Notes: a model not told the origin generated them from the sequence alone. Positions 5,531 through 47,528 are shown, counted from the first letter of the stretch. The stretch is DNA of 64,000 nucleotides from IMGVR_UViG_3300023202_000247:124001-188000; one strand, 5' to 3'. Numbers and translations are program-made.

Positions 5531-7000
5531 CCACGCAGTAGAGCAAAAGATCCACAGCAAGAGCAGCTTAGAGAGCGTAAAGACCAATGGAATAAAGAGG
5601 TTAGCAAGCTTATTACTGCTCTAATAGCTTTGAAGAAAGGTGTTAATGGTCAACCAATCGATGATATTGGATTGCCATCGTCTAGAATTACAGAGCCACT
5701 TCCACCACAAGTTGGTCAAATTGGAAATGGGTTGGGTACACGTTTCACTCAGATGTTTTCGGATTTGGACCGAATCATTTCTGAGCAAGACTCGTACTCA
5801 TCACAATTCACTCAACAAAGAGAACAAAAGAATCAAGATAGGTTGAGAGAGATGCAAGAAAGAGATAACCTTACAACAGCATCTCTCACCGCTCATGCTT
5901 CGAATAAATTCACGAGGATACTGACGTATCTCAAAAGTCCATTCCAATTTGGAGATAAAGATCGCGCGGCTCGTATTTCTATGTTGAGGGCCGCGGCCAA
6001 AATGTATGACAATGTTAGTGATGTTGGAGATGCCATTCTCAAACGAAACAGAACGTCCATACCAGAAGCTTTTTATGATGCATTGAATATATATCTTACA
6101 GCTGATAAAGAGTTCTTTGATAAAGTAGATGCTTTGTATGAAAGCAAAAAAGCAAAGAAAGAAAAAGTTGAAGAGCTGGTTGGTGAAAAGAAAGAAGAGG
6201 TAAAGCCCAAGGAACCTGAGCCGAATCCTGAGCCTGCTCAGCCTGCTCAGCCGGCTCAGCCAGTTGTCCCAGTTGATTCTGACAAGGACGGTCTCATTAC
6301 AAACAATGAGGTTAAAGTTGGTCAGTTGAAAAGCTTATTGAACCAACAACTTGGAAGAATTGAAAAATTGCAATTATCATTTTCTAAGGTTCAAAATTCT
6401 AATGAGGAAGCTGCAAACTTCAACTCTTACATGGGCTTCTTGCAATCATCCATAACAGATATGATAACTACACTTGATGCTGGTGGAGGTAATATAAACG
6501 AACTTACCAAATCATATAAGAAAATTGATGGTGATTTATCTGCGTTTGAACAACGTATCAGTTCCGTAGCATCGATTGAAAATGAAATGATGCGCAAGGT
6601 TGCTGGTAATATGGTTGGACGCTGGTTCCGTCGTAGACTGCTTGACATATTTCAAAGTGACGATTCAGAACTTAGATTGATACTAGAACAAGATACTAAT
6701 GTTCTTAAAAAAGATTTAAACGAGGTAATGAATGTATTAGAGTCTTCTAGTGCTGATATAGATACGGTTCGGAAACTTGCAGGGGACGTTGCATTGTCTC
6801 TTGCTACCATGGCTGCGACACTTCAACGATTGGCAGGAATTCACAATTCAATTTCTCGTGTCAAACACCTAACTGAAAAGTCTAAAGGTAAGACAATAAA
6901 GCTTTTAGATATTAAAGATGCAGATATAAAAAAACTAAGTTTGATGAGTCGTAAATACTATAGCATTGGCGACAAGATGAAAAAGGATGATGATGGATAA
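5528..7000 (+). CDS. hypothetical helical protein with PAQ linker, possibly an internal virion protein
   Basis: 490 aa; EPEPNPEPAQPAQPAQP; two similar domains after TAHA and RKVA. Confidence 0.6.
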   Translation: MPRSRAKDPQQEQLRERKDQWNKEVSKLITALIALKKGVNGQPIDDIGLPSSRITEPLPPQVGQIGNGLGTRFTQMFSDLDRIISEQDSYSSQFTQQREQKNQDRLREMQERDNLTTASLTAHASNKFTRILTYLKSPFQFGDKDRAARISMLRAAAKMYDNVSDVGDAILKRNRTSIPEAFYDALNIYLTADKEFFDKVDALYESKKAKKEKVEELVGEKKEEVKPKEPEPNPEPAQPAQPAQPVVPVDSDKDGLITNNEVKVGQLKSLLNQQLGRIEKLQLSFSKVQNSNEEAANFNSYMGFLQSSITDMITTLDAGGGNINELTKSYKKIDGDLSAFEQRISSVASIENEMMRKVAGNMVGRWFRRRLLDIFQSDDSELRLILEQDTNVLKKDLNEVMNVLESSSADIDTVRKLAGDVALSLATMAATLQRLAGIHNSISRVKHLTEKSKGKTIKLLDIKDADIKKLSLMSRKYYSIGDKMKKDDDG

Positions 7001-7418
7001 GGTTTCTATCGGTAATCATGAATTTAAAACTATTGTTGCTATTACTGATGAAGAGCAGCAGCGTGGGTTGATGTTTGTAGAGTGGCCGCCACCCGTTATG
7101 AGTTTTCCAGTCGTTACGGCACAGGTTCGTCAGTTCTGGATGAAAAATACTCAAGTACCTCTTGACATCGTATTCTGCCGTGATAATGTTGTGGTTGCTA
7201 TTTGTGAAGGTGAACCTCACAGTACGAAGATGGTTGGTCCTCGATGTCCAACCGACCTTGTGGTTGAATTACCACATGGCACGGCTGATGCTTGCGGGAT
7301 TCAGCCGGGAGATCCAGTGAGGCTGAAATTGTCTCAGGAGACTCTAACGCGCCGCGCCAAACACCTGATGACCGGCATATTCGGCTCAAAAGGTAAAAAT
7401 CTTGCACGGTCAATCTGA
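6987..7418 (+). CDS. DUF192 family protein
   Basis: EEQQRGLMF, FWMKNTQVPLDIVF, VVELPHG...GIQPGD. Confidence 0.85.
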   Translation: MMMDKVSIGNHEFKTIVAITDEEQQRGLMFVEWPPPVMSFPVVTAQVRQFWMKNTQVPLDIVFCRDNVVVAICEGEPHSTKMVGPRCPTDLVVELPHGTADACGIQPGDPVRLKLSQETLTRRAKHLMTGIFGSKGKNLARSI

Positions 7419-40714: not shown

Positions 40715-43399
40715 ATGATTAATTTACCTTATGTTAGTTTACACAATCAAACTACTTTTTCTACGATGGATGCATTGGTTAGCGTCCAAGAATTGTGTGA
40801 GCTGGCAAAGAAAATGGGACATGAGGCGGTGGCCATTACCGATCATGGAACCTTAGCATCCATGTGGGATGCCTATAAAATAGGTAAAAAGATGGGAATC
40901 AAAGTGATTCCCGGCTGTGAATTCAACTTCGTCGAGTCTGTCGACAATGATGAACCTTTACGTCACATAATTCTTTTGGCAAAAAATGCCACGGGTTATC
41001 ACAACTTACTGCTTCTCAATAAATTAGGCTTTGATAATAAAGCTATCATGTTCAAGTCTGCAATTCCGAGAATTGATTGGAAGCTTTTAGAAGATCACAG
41101 CGATGGTTTGATTTGTACCACAGCTTGTGGCAACGGAATCATCAGTCAGCTCATCATGCAAAAGAAACATGATGAAGCTAAAGAGTCTTTGAAAAGACTC
41201 AAAGATATATTTGGTGATGACCTAGCTATCGAATTGCAAGCACATGCTCTCGTACGAAAAGAGACGGCTTATTCCGGAGCTATTGATCAAAGGTTCATCA
41301 ACCTAAACCTTAAAAAGCTTTCAGAAGAACTCGGCATTAGAGCAATCGTTACGACGAATACACATTATGCTGATAAAGATGATTATCGTGCTCACGATAC
41401 ACTTCTAGCAATTAGAAGTGGTCAAACTGTATTCTCCGGAAATCGATTGAAATACAATGTCAATGATTTTTATTATAAACATCAGTTGGAGTTAGCATCA
41501 TTCTTTGTTCGTTTGCGTGGGTTGTATCCACAAAGCTTTGTTGAAAGTTTGTTTGAGAATACAGTTTACTTTGCAAACAAGTGCGAAGATCCCGAATGGA
41601 TTGATTTGAAGTATTCCAATCCGACCGGGAAGGAGTTGCCAAAATTTCCAGTCAGAGATGAGCCAAATCTAGATGCATTCGATGCTTGGGCAAAAAACAA
41701 TGCTCCCGGTCTTGATGATGACGTTGCGTACTTGAGGTATCGTTGTGACCTGGGATTGAAAAAGATGATCCCAGAATCAAAACATGATGAATACAAAGCA
41801 CGTTTGAAGGAAGAGTTCGATGTTATCGAATATCACGGCTTTAGCTCTTACATGCTCATTGTTGCCGATTTCATTAATTATGCAAGAAAAAATGGTATTC
41901 GCGTTGGACCCGGAAGGGGATCGGTAGCTGGCTCGCTGATTGCGTATCTATTGGAAATTCACGTAGCAGACCCCATCAAGTATGGTCTCATTTTCGCTCG
42001 TTTTCACAACAAAGAGAAAACATCATTTCCAGATATTGATGTTGACTTTGCTCCATCGGGACGTGACGAGGTACAAAACTATATTAGACAAAAATATGGT
42101 GAGGACTATGTTGCTCATGTTTCCAATGTTAATACTATAACGCCGAAGGTGTATGTAAAAGACATTGCCAGAGCACATGAGTTTGGTGGTGATAGAAAAG
42201 AGGCGGTAAAGATTGGAAATGAAATTGCTGACTTCATGCCTTCAGGCCCGAGCGCTCCCAAAAGCTTGGAAAAGGCCAAAGAGGAGTATGCTTTGTTTGC
42301 AGAGGCAATGGTTCAATTTCCGGAGCTTGCGGAGTTTGCCGATAAAATCGGAGGCAAGCCAAGAGCTTGGTCTACACACGCCGGTGGTTTAATCATTGGT
42401 GCCCGACCATTACCGGGTCTCGTTCCAGTACGTCGAGATGTACACGACTCCACGGCAATCGAGTATGACAAAGACAAGGCTGAAGAAATTGGCTTGGTCA
42501 AGATGGATACTCTCGGGTTGGAAACGCTCGACATCATAACCGATACCTATAAGTTGATTAAAGCAGTGGGTAAGGATGTACCACCAGACCCTCCGAGATT
42601 TGATGAATATGACAAAGAAACTTATGATTTAATATCTTCTGGTGATACCCTTTGTATTTTTCAGTTGAGCGGTATTGCGTCCACACTTTGTCAGTCAATC
42701 AAACCAAATAGCATCGAAGAGATTAGTTATATCAATGCGCTCGTACGTCCAAGTGCAAAAGCAATTGTTAAAGATTTCATTGCAACTCGTGAAGGAAAAA
42801 AGAAAGTAGAATTGCTGGATTCTTCTTTGGAACGTGCCTTTGGTGAAACATATGGGTTCGGACTATATGAAGAGTGTTTGCTTTATTTGGCTCAAGATGT
42901 TGCAGGATGGGATCTTCACTCAGCTGATAGGCTGAGAAAACTTACAAAAGAGAAAGGTAAGAATCCCAAAAAAGTTGCTGGGTGGCGTGAAGAGTTCATC
43001 AATGATGGTAAGAGCCAAGGAATTGATGAACATATTGTTACTAAGATTTGGGATGAAGTTGTAAATGGTTTCCAAGGATATGGGTTTAATAAATCATTAT
43101 ATTCTTTGCAGAAAGTTGATACATTTACTAAGGATGGTCAATTTTTAACATCCAAAGCAATTAAATATATAAGTTCAAATGAATATGTGCGTTCTCGTGA
43201 TGAAAAAACCGGTGTGGACATTTATGTTAGGGTAATTGATAATCATGACCACGGAAAGTTAGAAGTTGTTGATATTGAATTAGAAACTGGAGAAAAGGTT
43301 AGATGTACTATGAATCATAAGTTTAGAACAGTTGAAACCGGTGATATGGTACCTCTTCATCAAATTATTGAGAATGACTATTCTATAGTAGTGAAATGA
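40715..43399 (+). CDS. dnaE: DNA polymerase III alpha, N-terminal part fused to N-intein
   Basis: PHP (AITDHG, PGCE), GPGRGSVAGSL, FPDIDVDF, STHAGG, LVKMDTLGL; extein ends at GYGFNK. Confidence 0.95.
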   Translation: MINLPYVSLHNQTTFSTMDALVSVQELCELAKKMGHEAVAITDHGTLASMWDAYKIGKKMGIKVIPGCEFNFVESVDNDEPLRHIILLAKNATGYHNLLLLNKLGFDNKAIMFKSAIPRIDWKLLEDHSDGLICTTACGNGIISQLIMQKKHDEAKESLKRLKDIFGDDLAIELQAHALVRKETAYSGAIDQRFINLNLKKLSEELGIRAIVTTNTHYADKDDYRAHDTLLAIRSGQTVFSGNRLKYNVNDFYYKHQLELASFFVRLRGLYPQSFVESLFENTVYFANKCEDPEWIDLKYSNPTGKELPKFPVRDEPNLDAFDAWAKNNAPGLDDDVAYLRYRCDLGLKKMIPESKHDEYKARLKEEFDVIEYHGFSSYMLIVADFINYARKNGIRVGPGRGSVAGSLIAYLLEIHVADPIKYGLIFARFHNKEKTSFPDIDVDFAPSGRDEVQNYIRQKYGEDYVAHVSNVNTITPKVYVKDIARAHEFGGDRKEAVKIGNEIADFMPSGPSAPKSLEKAKEEYALFAEAMVQFPELAEFADKIGGKPRAWSTHAGGLIIGARPLPGLVPVRRDVHDSTAIEYDKDKAEEIGLVKMDTLGLETLDIITDTYKLIKAVGKDVPPDPPRFDEYDKETYDLISSGDTLCIFQLSGIASTLCQSIKPNSIEEISYINALVRPSAKAIVKDFIATREGKKKVELLDSSLERAFGETYGFGLYEECLLYLAQDVAGWDLHSADRLRKLTKEKGKNPKKVAGWREEFINDGKSQGIDEHIVTKIWDEVVNGFQGYGFNKSLYSLQKVDTFTKDGQFLTSKAIKYISSNEYVRSRDEKTGVDIYVRVIDNHDHGKLEVVDIELETGEKVRCTMNHKFRTVETGDMVPLHQIIENDYSIVVK
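43094..43396 (+). mobile_element. split intein N-fragment (101 aa, Ser1)
   Basis: starts SLYSLQKV right after FNK; G-x-x-E-V, IELETGEKVRCTMNHKF (block B TxxH). Confidence 0.88.
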
Positions 43400-45381
43400 C
43401 TAATGACTTAACGCAAAAATTCTTAAATAAGATCCCTAAACAATATCGTGAAAATATTGTGATCTTATCACCAGAAAAAGGTGGCAATTCAAGAGTAGAA
43501 TATCTGCATCCGATTTGTGGATGCAAAACAACCAGTACATTGAAGACTTTTGTTAAGCGAAAGTCTTTTGACAGTTGCTTAAAATGTTCCAATCAAAAAA
43601 ACTTTAACTACTATAAGAGTAAAATTGCTTTTCCGAATAATATAGATTTACTGGAGCCATTTCACGGTGGAGCAACAAAAGTTAGTTTCAAACACAATAT
43701 ATGTGAGTGTATAATAAACACAACATTGTCTAGACTGACCAACAGAGATCAGCTTGATTATTGTAAGAAATGCTATCAAGCATATTATTATGATTCAGCA
43801 TCAAATCTTGACAATGTAAAAATAATTGGTAAAAATAAAGGTTATAATTCTGACGCTGAGTATACATGCTCAAAATGTAGTAAAATATTTTATACGAAAC
43901 TTTCAAATCTTATTAACAGAAAAGATATTAGCAAGTGCCATGAATGCTCTAAACAAGAAACTTTAGATAGTTACTTGACGTTACTTTCTAAAGACATATT
44001 GAATAGAATAAAAGTTTTAAATCATAATGGCAGTTATTCTAGAATTAAATATGATAATCCATGCGGACATCAAACAGAATCAACTATATCTGATTTTGTG
44101 AAGCGCGAACAATTTGACTATTGTCAACATTGTTCTCAAAAAAAGAGTGTTACTGATTACATTGATTTGATTGATAAAAAGTATCATCAAAATATAGAAA
44201 TTGTTAAAGATTTGGGAGCAAAGTCTCCAATTATTTATACGTGCCCATCTTGTGGAAACAAAAGAAGATTAACTGTCAAATCACTACAACGTTTTGACGA
44301 TTGCTTGAATTGTAATAACAGTTGTCGTATTTCAAAGCAAGAAATGATTGATAATCTCAAGCCGTTTTTGAACAACATAAAAATCGTTGATGGTTTTCCA
44401 GGGCATAGAACCAGTGTTGTAACCGGTAACTGCGTTGCTTGTAATTCCAAGGTTGAAAACTATTACTTTAATTTTTCAAGATACTATACTTATTATAACG
44501 AACCAAGATGCAGTAGTTGCAGCCCAAAGAGCATAGAGCAAAAAATGCTGGCCAATTTTGTTGGGTCGTTAACAGATTTCATAGAAAATGATAAGTCAAT
44601 AATCAAATCATCAGAAACAGATCGTAACCTAGAAATCGATATTTATTGTCCTAAGGAAAAGTTTGCTATTGAATATAATGGTTTGCTTTGGCATTCCGAA
44701 AAATATGGAAAAGATAAGAATTATCATTTCTATAAAACAAGACAGTGTCAAGAGCATGGTATATATTTGTTACATATATGGTCAGATAAATATAAGAAAC
44801 ATCCAGAAATATATCACTCTATAATAAGATACTGTTTGGGTAAAATAAAGAATAGAATATTTGCAAGACGCTGTATTTTGAAAGAATTGGACAAGAATAT
44901 CTCAAGAGATTTTTTTACAACAAATCATCTTGATGGCAATGTCGGTTGTCTAAAAGCATGGGGTTTGTTTCATGATGAAAAGTTGATTCAAGCTATCTCG
45001 GTAAGGCGTGTGAGTAAGCAAAACAGTAAATACGCTTCTTATTTAGAAATTGCAAGAATGGCAACTCTTTTAAACCATTCAGTGGTTGGAGGCGAATCAA
45101 AACTGTTGAGCTTTGTTGAAAAGTTTGCTCGTGATAATGAATATGCTGGTATCTTGAATTATGTAAGTGCTGATTTTGGAAAGCCTCAACAAAATAAATA
45201 TCATTTTGAGTACAAAGGTATTACTGATGTTTCGTATTGTTATACGGATGGTAATAAAAGAATTTCTCGACAACGCCTTCAAAACAGACCTAAAGGTGTT
45301 AGTGAGCGCGCTCATGCCAATAGTTTGAATCTCTGGCGCGTTAATCTAACACCAAACTTCATTTATATATTGAATTTCTAA
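43396..45381 (+). mobile_element. free-standing homing-endonuclease-like gene: six zinc-ribbon repeats, Vsr/DUF559-like nuclease, C-terminal Mom/GNAT-like domain
   Basis: six Cys/His repeats; LEIDIY...AIEYNGLLWH; LEIARMA...VVGGESKLL; lies between the intein halves. Confidence 0.78.
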
Positions 45382-45491
45382 TGTCAAAAATAAAATCACT
45401 AAAACCGGTTGGTAAATTGCAAACATATGATCTGGAAGTTGACCATCCAGATCATCAGTATTATTTATCAAACGGAGTTTTAACTAGCAAC
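45381..45491 (+). mobile_element. split intein C-fragment (37 aa)
   Basis: MSKIKSLKPVGKLQTYDLEVDHPDHQYYLSNGVLTSN followed by Ser+1. Confidence 0.92.
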
Positions 45492-46715
45492 AGCCACTCT
45501 ACACTTTACTCTATGATATCATTTCATACTGCATATCTAAAAGCTCATTTTCCTTTAGAGTTTTTGGTTGCAAACTTGAAGAGTGAGACAAAAAAGACAT
45601 CAAACCCCAAGGCCAAGGACAATGTCTTAAAAATAAAGGACGAGATTCGTAGTCTTGGAATAAAGTTGATTGCTCCCAACGTAAACAACAGCTTGAGGGT
45701 TTACAAAATTATCACCGACAAAACGTTGATGACGGGACTCAACAGCATCAAGTATGTTAGCGATGATGCGATTGAAGATATTGTAGCTAAAAGACCATTT
45801 AAGAGCTATAGTGATTTTATTGCCAGAACAGATAGTCGCAAAGTAAGAGCCAACTCCATTCAAGCCCTTGCAGCATCTGGTTGTCTCGATGATTTCGGAT
45901 TACCACGTAAGTTGATGTTTCTTTACGCATCGGATTTTAGAAAGAAACAAAGCTCGGCTTTGAGAGCAGCCAAAAAGGCTGGTAATGATGAGTTGGTGAA
46001 GCAGATTACCGAAGATTTCGAATATCCATGGCCAGAGGATTCTGAATGGTCGGTGCAAGAACTTTTTGCCTTGGAAGAGTATTTCATGGGGGAGGGTTTG
46101 AGCGGCACGGTACAAGAACGCTATGTCGGTTTCTTCGATTCTAGCTCTATTGATTATAGACTTTTGCCCAAGATGTTTCCATATCGTCTTCTTGACGAAG
46201 ATGATAAAGTTAACAGAAAAAAGAATACACACCCAATACCAAATAGTAAAGTTCCATATTTGAAAGGAATTATAAAAAGACTATTTTCTTTTAAGGTTAA
46301 GAAAGATGATTCGCCAATTCGCGGTCAAGAAATGGCAATTATTACCATACAAGATCCATATGGAACGGATATGACTTGTATAGCGTTTCCTGATACATGG
46401 GTGCATATACAGAAGCGCATCTATGAGGATTTGTCTGGACGCTCTGCAAAACTAGATGTTGGTCTTGCTGTTGCCATGACCGGTTCGTTTCAGCACGAAA
46501 ATGAACATGTTCATTCATTCATCATTGATGATATATTGGATATACAGGAGTCTCCGGCTCTTCCAAAGGATAGAGATTCTAAAAGTATCAAACTGCCTCG
46601 TAAGAAAAAGGTTAAAGAGGACCCCGAGAAATTGGAAAAAGAAGAACTAGCTGAAATCATGGAAGATGATATGATTCAAGAGGGTTTTGTGTTTGATGAG
46701 CCGGAACCATTATAA
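45381..46715 (+). CDS. dnaE: DNA polymerase III alpha, C-terminal part preceded by C-intein
   Basis: SHSTLYSMISFHTAYLKAHFPLEF, GLNSIKYV (HhH), OB fold MAIITIQD. Confidence 0.93.
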   Translation: MSKIKSLKPVGKLQTYDLEVDHPDHQYYLSNGVLTSNSHSTLYSMISFHTAYLKAHFPLEFLVANLKSETKKTSNPKAKDNVLKIKDEIRSLGIKLIAPNVNNSLRVYKIITDKTLMTGLNSIKYVSDDAIEDIVAKRPFKSYSDFIARTDSRKVRANSIQALAASGCLDDFGLPRKLMFLYASDFRKKQSSALRAAKKAGNDELVKQITEDFEYPWPEDSEWSVQELFALEEYFMGEGLSGTVQERYVGFFDSSSIDYRLLPKMFPYRLLDEDDKVNRKKNTHPIPNSKVPYLKGIIKRLFSFKVKKDDSPIRGQEMAIITIQDPYGTDMTCIAFPDTWVHIQKRIYEDLSGRSAKLDVGLAVAMTGSFQHENEHVHSFIIDDILDIQESPALPKDRDSKSIKLPRKKKVKEDPEKLEKEELAEIMEDDMIQEGFVFDEPEPL

Positions 46716-46748: not shown

Positions 46749-47528
46749 ATGAGATGTATGAATTGTCAGGCAGAAATTCCCCCTGAATGGGTAGCAGCTA
46801 TTCAGCGCAATGAATGCCCAGGATGTGGCAAAGAAATAATGAATGACCGCGCAAAAGAACTTTTGGCAGAATTAACAGATGCAATGGAAAGAATGCCAAA
46901 AAATCCGCAAGGTGTTGCAGGTTGGTTGATGTCCAATTATGAATTTCGTAAAATTGGTGAAGCTGTTCCAACTGAAAGGTTTCACGTTGGTGGGCCCCAG
47001 ATGCCGATGCAAGGAATGCAAGGACACCCTCAAGCTGCTCCCGGTTCCCCAGAACAATTTCTTCAAAACAGTACAGCATACAATACCATACAACAAACAA
47101 GAGCAAAGGTTGCTGAGCGCAACAATCTGAAACAAGCAGCTGCTATGATTAGTCAAGACATGTACGGCAATGGTTCGTCTGAAATTGAAGTACCACCAGA
47201 ACCAGACCCGTTATTGGATGATTTGGGCTTGGAGAGTTTGCCAGATGATATTGATCCAAATACTCGTGCAATGTTGATGGAAGAACAAGAACGTCAAGCT
47301 TATGAACAAATGCGAGGACCAAGAGTTGCAAAATCTTTAGCTTCCCAGGCTGATTTTCACGGAGATGCAAGCCCAGAAGAAATTCAACTCGCTGTACAAG
47401 AGACTTTGAATTATGGTAAAGAACTGGAAGCTAGAAATGAAGAAGTTAAAAATATGCAAAGGATGCAGCGGTTGAAGAATGGACTTGTTCCCAAAGGTCA
47501 AGGAGTCGTAACTCGACGTGACGGTTGA
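46749..47528 (+). CDS. zinc-ribbon hypothetical protein
   Basis: CMNC...CPGCG at the N-terminus. Confidence 0.6.
   Translation: MRCMNCQAEIPPEWVAAIQRNECPGCGKEIMNDRAKELLAELTDAMERMPKNPQGVAGWLMSNYEFRKIGEAVPTERFHVGGPQMPMQGMQGHPQAAPGSPEQFLQNSTAYNTIQQTRAKVAERNNLKQAAAMISQDMYGNGSSEIEVPPEPDPLLDDLGLESLPDDIDPNTRAMLMEEQERQAYEQMRGPRVAKSLASQADFHGDASPEEIQLAVQETLNYGKELEARNEEVKNMQRMQRLKNGLVPKGQGVVTRRDG

Follow-up and report, generated by a model that had tools for sequence, protein, structure and literature searches.

A predicted Hef-type homing endonuclease with six zinc-ribbon modules and a Mom-like domain in the fractured dnaE of a jumbo phage

In fractured genes, a host gene is split into adjacent open reading frames (ORFs) that carry the two halves of an intein, and an endonuclease ORF lies between them on the same strand. 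Dassa et al. (2009; NAR 37:2560, PMC2677866) described 26 such loci, three of them in dnaE; half have Vsr-like endonucleases, and there is one endonuclease-less allele (gp41-7). Here we describe a dnaE locus from the 321-kb record of a jumbo phage, IMGVR_UViG_3300023202_000247 (positions 124001-188000, the whole stretch of 64,000 nucleotides (nt) that was analysed, hereafter the window). The ORF 43396-45381 (plus strand, counted from the first nucleotide of the window) encodes a protein that we call P0001, and we consider it likely to be a free-standing homing endonuclease gene, inserted where a split intein is divided into its two halves. As in the loci of Dassa et al., a replication gene of phage type is interrupted, a Vsr-like nuclease is encoded, and some alleles lack the endonuclease (L023 and L033 here). 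The endonucleases of that study have an N-terminal DNA-binding region (NUMOD-3 in two of them) and a Vsr-like domain, and neither a zinc-ribbon array nor a GNAT tail is mentioned there; in addition, the ORFs of the present locus overlap, so that it has no 5' hairpin or late-promoter spacer, unlike those loci.

The enzymes of the 'Hef type' have already been placed in the Vsr-like family named EDxHD (Taylor et al. 2011, PMC3239194). I-Bth0305I, the prototype of this family, has a nuclease homologous to that of P0001 and, like it, a DNA-binding region N-terminal to the nuclease. However, it is an intron-encoded protein of 266 amino acids (aa) with NUMOD and helix-turn-helix elements, and it ends with the nuclease domain, whereas P0001 has six zinc ribbons, a histidine (H444) at the position of D222, and a GNAT domain of 180 aa after the nuclease. 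Hef and the 'Hef-like' enzymes of T4-like, Campylobacter, Bacillus AR9/PBS1, and other phages share with P0001 a nuclease and C-terminal domain conserved as one unit, as well as a variable number of N-terminal zinc-ribbon modules, and their annotated function is homing. Most of them differ in being free-standing between genes rather than within a split intein, and most keep the DxR, Tyr, and RIWDCG motifs of the Mom-like domain, all of which the P0001 clade has lost; the Campylobacter phages show a multi-copy pattern, whereas the phage of P0001 has a single copy. The homing function was reportedly tested for Hef itself (Sandegren et al. 2005), and nrdB is reported to be cleaved by the Hef of phage U5 (PMC2988022).

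The C-terminal domain leads to a third group of described proteins. Mom is a Gly-tRNA-dependent GNAT that modifies adenine at N6, and H58, Y59, R111, S124, D149, R151, and Y159 matter for its activity, the R151A and D149A variants being inactive or nearly so (2026; PMC13219725). Fusions of restriction endonuclease (REase)-fold nucleases with Mom-like domains, a make-up that P0001 shares, occur in jumbo phages and have been read as restriction-modification pairs (Iyer et al. 2021, PMC7824862). In the papers that could be read, we found no statement that Hef-type homing endonucleases are REase-Mom fusions, nor any of a REase-Mom clade in an unambiguous homing context with a degenerate Mom site. 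The present locus is a modest addition to a known arrangement and a known enzyme family, and what is unusual about it is the six-module array and the half-lost Mom catalytic site.

The interrupted dnaE gene

Two adjacent ORFs on the same strand, 40715-43399 (894 aa) and 45381-46715, jointly encode a whole polymerase, and the P0001 gene lies between them, with the following layout:

40715..43093, plus strand: dnaE N-extein (PHP, pol III alpha, and finger domains), C-terminal ...GYGFNK; Pfam PF02811, PF07733, and PF17657, NCBIfam pol III alpha at E 1e-182
43094..43399, plus strand: N-half of the split intein, 101 aa and stop codon; N-terminal Ser, TxxH block B, TIGR01445, and a weak PF14890 match
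43396..45381, plus strand: P0001, probable free-standing homing endonuclease gene; intact ORF, 661 aa, 0 internal stops, PHROG matches
43411..44529, plus strand: six zinc-ribbon modules in tandem, ~60 aa each, a presumed DNA-binding array; repeat profile and ligand pattern
43411-43596, 43600-43782, and 43786-43956, plus strand: zinc-ribbon modules R1, R2, and R3 of P0001
43960-44142, 44146-44322, and 44326-44529, plus strand: zinc-ribbon modules R4, R5, and R6 of P0001
44533..44829, plus strand: Vsr-like (EDxHD) nuclease domain, residues 380-478; profile match to 3R3P and conserved block
44830..45378, plus strand: Mom-like GNAT domain, residues 479-661; structure model, Foldseek, VIA-align, and hhalign
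45381..45491, plus strand: C-half of the split intein, 37 aa, C-terminal ...VLTSN; TIGR01443 intein_Cterm
45492..46715, plus strand: dnaE C-extein, N-terminal SHSTLYS...; PF14579 HHH_6 and NCBIfam pol III alpha matches

The intein breaks dnaE at GYGFNK/SHS, a boundary set by alignment to intein-less alleles. Intein blocks A and B are visible, and a terminal Asn is followed by Ser+1. In NCBIfam, the C-intein scores 22.1 bits with TIGR01443, above the cut-off of 15.6, and the N-intein reaches the same 22.1 bits with TIGR01445 (intein_Nterm), just under the cut-off of 24.5. The endonuclease ORF has its own ATG and stop codon and is not fused in frame to either intein half: the stop of the N-intein ORF overlaps its start (ATGA, 43396-43399), and its own stop overlaps the start of the C-intein (TAATG, 45379-45383). 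As judged from the sequence, this is a fractured gene, with a separate endonuclease ORF between split-intein halves that are predicted to splice.

N-inteins homologous to that of the window were found at the same dnaE site in nine loci, and their first residue varies at this one site: six (the window, L001, L025, L027, L048, and L053) begin with Ser, two (L002 and L033) with Cys, and that of L023 with Thr. In all three cases checked (window, L001, and L004), the C-intein has Ser (...TSN) as its second-last residue, where His is usual. The NCBIfam models of the cyanobacterial split DnaE, PRK09532 and PRK07373, match 45381-45599 and 40715-43396 end to end, intein parts included. In cyanobacteria, DnaE is split a few residues upstream, before CFNKSHS, and not at FNK/SHS.

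Alleles at the insertion site and proposed homing

Scanned against IMG/VR, the last 191 N-extein residues gave 54 related dnaE loci, on contigs of up to 480 kb. The great majority (47/54, L006 and L008 among them) are intein-less and contiguous through GYGFNxSHS; in the other seven, an N-intein begins precisely here and the ORF ends after ~100 of its residues. Six of the seven were inspected downstream. Two of these, L023 and L033, have the split intein without an endonuclease gene, with spacers of 23 and 99 nt, respectively. An earlier reading of the window, made from the sequence only, had named an intein-less or an endonuclease-less dnaE allele as the expected target, and both kinds thus exist in related phages. 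L025 and L053 carry a different Vsr-like endonuclease (342-351 aa); its zinc finger is of the Ros/MucR kind, its Vsr-like motif is shorter, and it lacks a GNAT tail. In L048, a spacer of 257 nt (6913-7169) still encodes the last ~50 residues of an endonuclease of this same type (...PGIYKIGSSYN); here an endonuclease gene in decay shows the stage of loss in the homing cycle. The endonuclease of L027 (6896-8110) is a hybrid, in which an R1 module like that of P0001 precedes the body, with Ros/MucR finger and Vsr-like motif, that L025 and L053 have. Endonucleases of the P0001 type occupy the same site in further loci: the closest homologue, P0002 (69% identity), lies in the same fractured dnaE at L001, and P0003 (44% identity) is found at L002-L004 at the same dnaE site, within a Cys-initiated intein.

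Some of these loci carry additional genes or inserts. About 3 kb downstream of the hybrid gene, at L027:11108-12580, a second ORF of at least 490 aa, which runs off the locus end, matches the hidden Markov model (HMM) of Hef-type nucleases (E 4e-6). The N part of dnaE in L001 (L001:745-4854) has 1369 aa versus 894 aa in the window, and contains an extra contiguous intein with weak LAGLIDADG/Hom_end matches; this is a second, independent mobile insert in dnaE, of which the dnaE of the window has none. In L004 (2679-3180), and also in the L002 family, two small ORFs of 70 and 87-91 aa, without Pfam match or counterpart in the window, are present; those of L004 lie between the gene of the four-module endonuclease and the C-intein. 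Finally, just 3' of dnaE in the window, the ORF 46749-47528 has an N-terminal CxxC...CxxC zinc ribbon (MxCxxC...CPxCG), and this ORF is kept in the same place in all loci inspected (L023, L025, L027, L033, L048, and L053).

The composition and the divergence of the locus give further signs of mobility. The nuclease region had been described in the sequence-only reading as more AT-rich than the flanking dnaE, which holds for the gene (G+C content 0.316, versus 0.41 in the N-extein and 0.39 in the C-extein, the window being at 0.386). Since the N-intein (0.31) and the C-intein (0.32) are as GC-poor as the endonuclease, the AT-rich block is, however, the whole cassette 43094-45491, and not the endonuclease gene alone. 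Between the window and L001, the exteins are 93-97% identical, the intein halves 73-81%, and the endonuclease 70%; between the window and L002/L004, the respective values are 55-57%, 69-76%, and about 45%. The divergence of the cassette disagrees with that of the exteins, and the cassette therefore has a history different from that of the host gene. Moreover, the N-inteins of L002, with an endonuclease of the P0001 type, and L053, with the other type, are 81% identical, so that one endonuclease gene has been swapped for another in a single lineage of inteins. From these comparisons, two modes of movement are suggested, one in which the whole cassette enters an intein-less dnaE and one in which the endonuclease gene alone enters an empty split intein.

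We propose that the polymerase would be restored via protein trans-splicing of the two dnaE products, and that the six zinc-ribbon modules of P0001 would bind a long stretch of dnaE, which the Vsr-like domain would then cut. By analogy with I-Bth0305I, a dimer might break both strands close to the site of insertion. The cut would fall in the dnaE of a co-infecting relative devoid of the insert, that is, in the contiguous GYGFNxSHS of an intein-less allele or in an endonuclease-less split intein, and recombinational repair off the carrier genome would copy the cassette in. As the insert splits the cut site, the carrier genome itself would be immune. The Mom-like GNAT would pack on the nuclease as a rigid unit and, in the P0001 clade, would serve as a structural or DNA-contacting part, and not for adenine modification of the Mom type.

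A possible, though doubtful, alternative concerns the target: P0001 would cut the spacer of an endonuclease-less split-intein allele and not the intein-less dnaE, the intein being a pre-existing landing pad into which the endonuclease gene alone moves. The existence of split alleles with spacers of only 23 nt (L023) and 99 nt (L033), the association of one intein lineage (L002 and L053) with two unrelated endonuclease types, and the hybrid at the same spot in L027 all fit this possibility. On the other hand, the intein halves are as GC-poor as the endonuclease gene and, like it, discordant with the exteins, suggesting that the whole cassette travels too, and among the potential targets the intein-less alleles (47/54) are in the clear majority. 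Homing of the whole cassette and homing of the endonuclease gene only are compatible and not mutually exclusive.

Domains of P0001

Direct scans of P0001 against Pfam and NCBIfam gave nothing significant, with weak zinc-ribbon matches only, and phmmer against the PDB sequences returned chance kinase matches only; its domains are thus seen only via PHROGs, the Pfam matches of its homologues, and the family profile. In PHROGs, P0001 matches phrog_559 (E 1.9e-66) and phrog_3339, 'homing endonuclease' (E 2.7e-48). Relatives found by tblastn in 415 phage records, mostly annotated as 'Hef-like homing endonuclease', cover residues ~372-629/657 at 27-37% identity, and a blastn search of the locus against phage genomes aligned only the nuclease core, over ~120-150 nt and with 70-75% identity, there being nothing closer in the collection. 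The profile of 54 homologues has as its best PDB match 3R3P, the catalytic domain of I-Bth0305I (E 7.7e-8). In this alignment, D196, N208, and H213 of I-Bth0305I correspond to D415, N428, and H433 of P0001 (D196 and H213 are mutated in the crystal construct), the invariant Glu of AIExNG corresponds to E426, and E382, in a conserved SxxE, is a plausible equivalent of E170. The motifs that had suggested a Vsr-like nuclease core, at residues 412-466, are borne out as a block conserved in the 54 homologues (E413-x-D415...A-I-E426-Y-N428-G...W-H433...H444-x-x-K447...D463), and homologues of P0001 match PF18741 REase_MTES_1575. The AlphaFold2 (AF2) model of the nuclease, residues 380-478, has a predicted local distance difference test score (pLDDT) >85, while the fold-search lists are filled by GNAT matches to the tail. 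The PHROG, tblastn, and profile matches place P0001, as a predicted member, in the Hef-type branch of the Vsr-like/EDxHD homing endonucleases.

N-terminal to the nuclease, residues 6-378 are made up of the zinc-ribbon modules. Among the thirty Cys of P0001 there are six sets of four zinc ligands, repeating every 55-65 residues, each consisting of a CxC, CxxC, or CxH knuckle and a CxxC 17-22 residues on: C41/C43/C61/C64 (R1), C103/C105/C123/C126 (R2), C158/C161/C181/C184 (R3), C223(+H225)/C243/C246 (R4), C283/C286/C303/C306 (R5), and C346/C349/C372/C375 (R6). The aligned modules share invariant Gly and Cys positions, and pairwise local alignments of R1-R5 reach z-scores of up to 20 against shuffles, R6 being divergent with the pattern retained. 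The six repeats first noticed in the bare sequence are also recovered by a repeat HMM, with six modules in P0001 (E 1e-22 to 6e-29), six in P0002 too, and four in P0003-P0005 (39-44% identical to P0001), R2-R3 being absent from the four-module proteins; six is the upper end of the range among the homologues. P0012, another homologue, matches PF14311 (DUF4379, 'probable treble-clef zinc finger') and PF21817 CapR significantly, and the repeat profile aligns with one of its modules (hhalign E 1.5e-5). In the AF2 model of residues 1-379 (mean pLDDT 79.6), every module has a helix, three strands, and a helix, and the predicted template modelling score (pTM) of 0.34 indicates modules without a fixed mutual arrangement. 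A Foldseek search with the 379-residue array model gave low-TM matches only (<0.2), at a root-mean-square deviation (rmsd) >17 A and mostly >20, and is silent on the fold of the module. The array presumably reads the DNA of the target site, for which the best available hint is the R1-like module common to two otherwise different endonucleases at one site, P0001 and the hybrid of L027.

The tail that follows the nuclease had been likened, from the sequence, to Mom-like GNAT proteins, and the likeness is supported; the C-terminal motifs named in that reading fall within a conserved GNAT domain. P0001 itself has no PF25680 match at E <= 1; its homologues P0007, P0049, and P0054 exceed the Pfam cut-off for PF25680, 'Mom protein family', over the post-nuclease region, where several homologues also exceed that for PF00583 GNAT. 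GNATs are the second-best PDB matches of the family profile (2BSW, E 1.4e-5), and the family alignment matches Mu Mom in hhalign (E 8.3e-5, probability 61%), the motifs with the essential residues of Mom lining up. The structure prediction by domain agrees with this: the AF2 model of residues 380-661 has a pLDDT of 95.3 and a pTM of 0.91, a confidence that implies a single rigid unit of nuclease and tail in the prediction, and among solved structures its top Foldseek match is Mom of phage Mu (8BV8, E 4e-6), followed by many GNATs. With VIA-align, model residues 110-282 match the GNAT 2BSW at Z 13.3 over 129 aa and Mom 8BV8 at Z 12.1 over 136 aa, with an rmsd of 2.7 in both cases. The tail may share with Mom an insertion before the last strands: in the model, short helices 246-249 and 258-264 lie between strands 235-238 and 268-271 (model residues), the same place as the helical insertion of Mom (residues ~175-209), but shorter.

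In the case of the residues essential in Mom, the alignment with the 54 homologues and P0001 is as follows:

Mom H58: kept in 51/54 homologues; P0001 H511
Mom R111: kept in 52/54 homologues; P0001 R554
Mom S124: kept in 35/54 homologues; P0001 S568
Mom D149: kept in 42/54 homologues; P0001 Ser (S591)
Mom R151: kept in 35/54 homologues; P0001 Asp (D593)
Mom Y159: kept in 43/54 homologues; P0001 Gln (Q599)

P0001, a probable homing element and not an anti-restriction gene such as mom, has thus kept the equivalents of H58, R111, and S124, whereas those of D149, R151, and Y159 are replaced, and the position of Y59 is Leu. The pattern is shared by P0002-P0004, and P0005 differs only by Asp at the D149 position; across P0001-P0005, the D149, R151, and Y159 positions are Ser (Asp in P0005), Asp, and Gln/Leu/Lys/Ser, respectively. 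The C-terminal RIWDCG motif of the family is also lost in these five proteins, while most of the other 49 homologues retain this motif and the three equivalents. Even so, no other part of the protein is as well conserved in this clade: between the window and L002, the tail has 59% identity, versus 51% for the nuclease and 35% for the repeats, and rough estimates of the ratio of nonsynonymous to synonymous substitution rates (dN/dS) between the window and L001 fall from 0.15 in the repeats and 0.11 in the nuclease to ~0.06 in the tail. Because the equivalents of D149, R151, and Y159 are lost in what is the best-conserved part, the tail is probably needed, but for something other than Mom chemistry: in the P0001 clade, it is probably a structural, dimerising, or DNA-contacting part and not a modifier of the Mom type. 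Of the two options that the sequence-only reading had offered for the tail, an inactive GNAT used for binding or structure fits better than DNA modification does, as three of the six Mom-essential positions are lost in the clade. An active momylase was rejected as the leading reading of the tail, the DxR and Tyr positions being lost.

More speculatively, and in our view unlikely, the Mom-like GNAT might be an obligatory working part of Hef-type endonucleases and not a passenger, acting in most of them as a live acyl or aminoacyl transferase on DNA beside the cut, and in the dnaE clade as a non-catalytic, base-flipping or DNA-clamping module. If so, Mom of phage Mu and the Hef-type endonucleases would share a DNA-adenine-handling ancestor, and the enzymes of the fractured dnaE would be a natural 'dead Mom' for learning how the fold reads DNA.

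These same data bear on the idea that P0001 is a bifunctional enzyme of the restriction-modification kind, whose nuclease would attack host or rival-phage DNA while the Mom-like domain acylates the adenines of its own phage for protection. This is the published prediction for the REase-Mom fusions of jumbo phages (Iyer et al. 2021, PMC7824862), and it agrees with the retention of the Mom-essential H, R, S, D, R, and Y by most members of the wider family, as well as with the strong purifying selection on the P0001 tail and its retained GNAT cofactor loop. We regard it as improbable for P0001: its clade is without the equivalents of D149, R151, and Y159, while Mom itself is inactive or nearly so as R151A or D149A. 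In addition, the gene sits exactly between the intein halves, where close relatives may have the gene too, none, another one, or a remnant, as expected of a site-specific selfish gene, and so many sequence-reading modules in a row are better suited to a single long site than to general restriction. There is also one copy in the genome, no paralogue of P0001 having been found in the 321-kb record beyond the gene itself.

Weight of the evidence and meaning

Several points weigh against the reading of P0001 as a homing endonuclease with a Mom-inactive tail. Its cleavage site, oligomeric state, and target are all inferred, and the prediction of a homodimer of residues 380-661 scored 0.00, which is evidence neither way. 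D222 of I-Bth0305I, the last acidic residue of the active site, aligns with H444, a His nearly invariant in the Hef-type relatives, so that the catalytic details of the P0001 branch may differ from those of I-Bth0305I. No homologue of the zinc-ribbon modules has a solved structure with DNA, and the search with the array model was uninformative. As for the tail, the alignment of the loop near the DxR motif may be off by 1-2 residues, and dS is saturated in the comparison of the window with L001, which is why the dN/dS values are rough. Besides H511, R554, and S568, the tail retains the GNAT cofactor loop (GGxSK) despite its degenerate site, and it may still have some catalytic activity.

It is very improbable that P0001 is a domesticated or decaying gene that no longer cuts DNA and is kept through translational coupling to the dnaE halves or a regulatory role of its DNA-binding array: although its ORF overlaps both neighbours, and homing endonuclease genes commonly decay once fixed, as the remnant at the same site in L048 illustrates, the frame is intact, every conserved nuclease residue is present, and dN/dS is ~0.1 in all domains, nuclease included. 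Judged by these conserved residues and the low dN/dS, the P0001 gene looks functional.

With P0001 read as a homing endonuclease, one locus joins three published lines, namely fractured genes, EDxHD/Hef homing endonucleases, and REase-Mom fusions. Its unambiguous genetic context argues that at least this branch of the REase-Mom proteins are homing endonucleases and not restriction-modification enzymes. The set of alleles at the dnaE site (intein-less, empty split, remnant, two endonuclease types, and hybrid) is a natural series for the entry, swap, and loss of endonucleases in inteins. In turn, an array of four to six zinc-ribbon modules on one target, together with a Mom-like domain that is degenerate yet conserved, is relevant to the engineering of long-site nucleases and to Mom chemistry.

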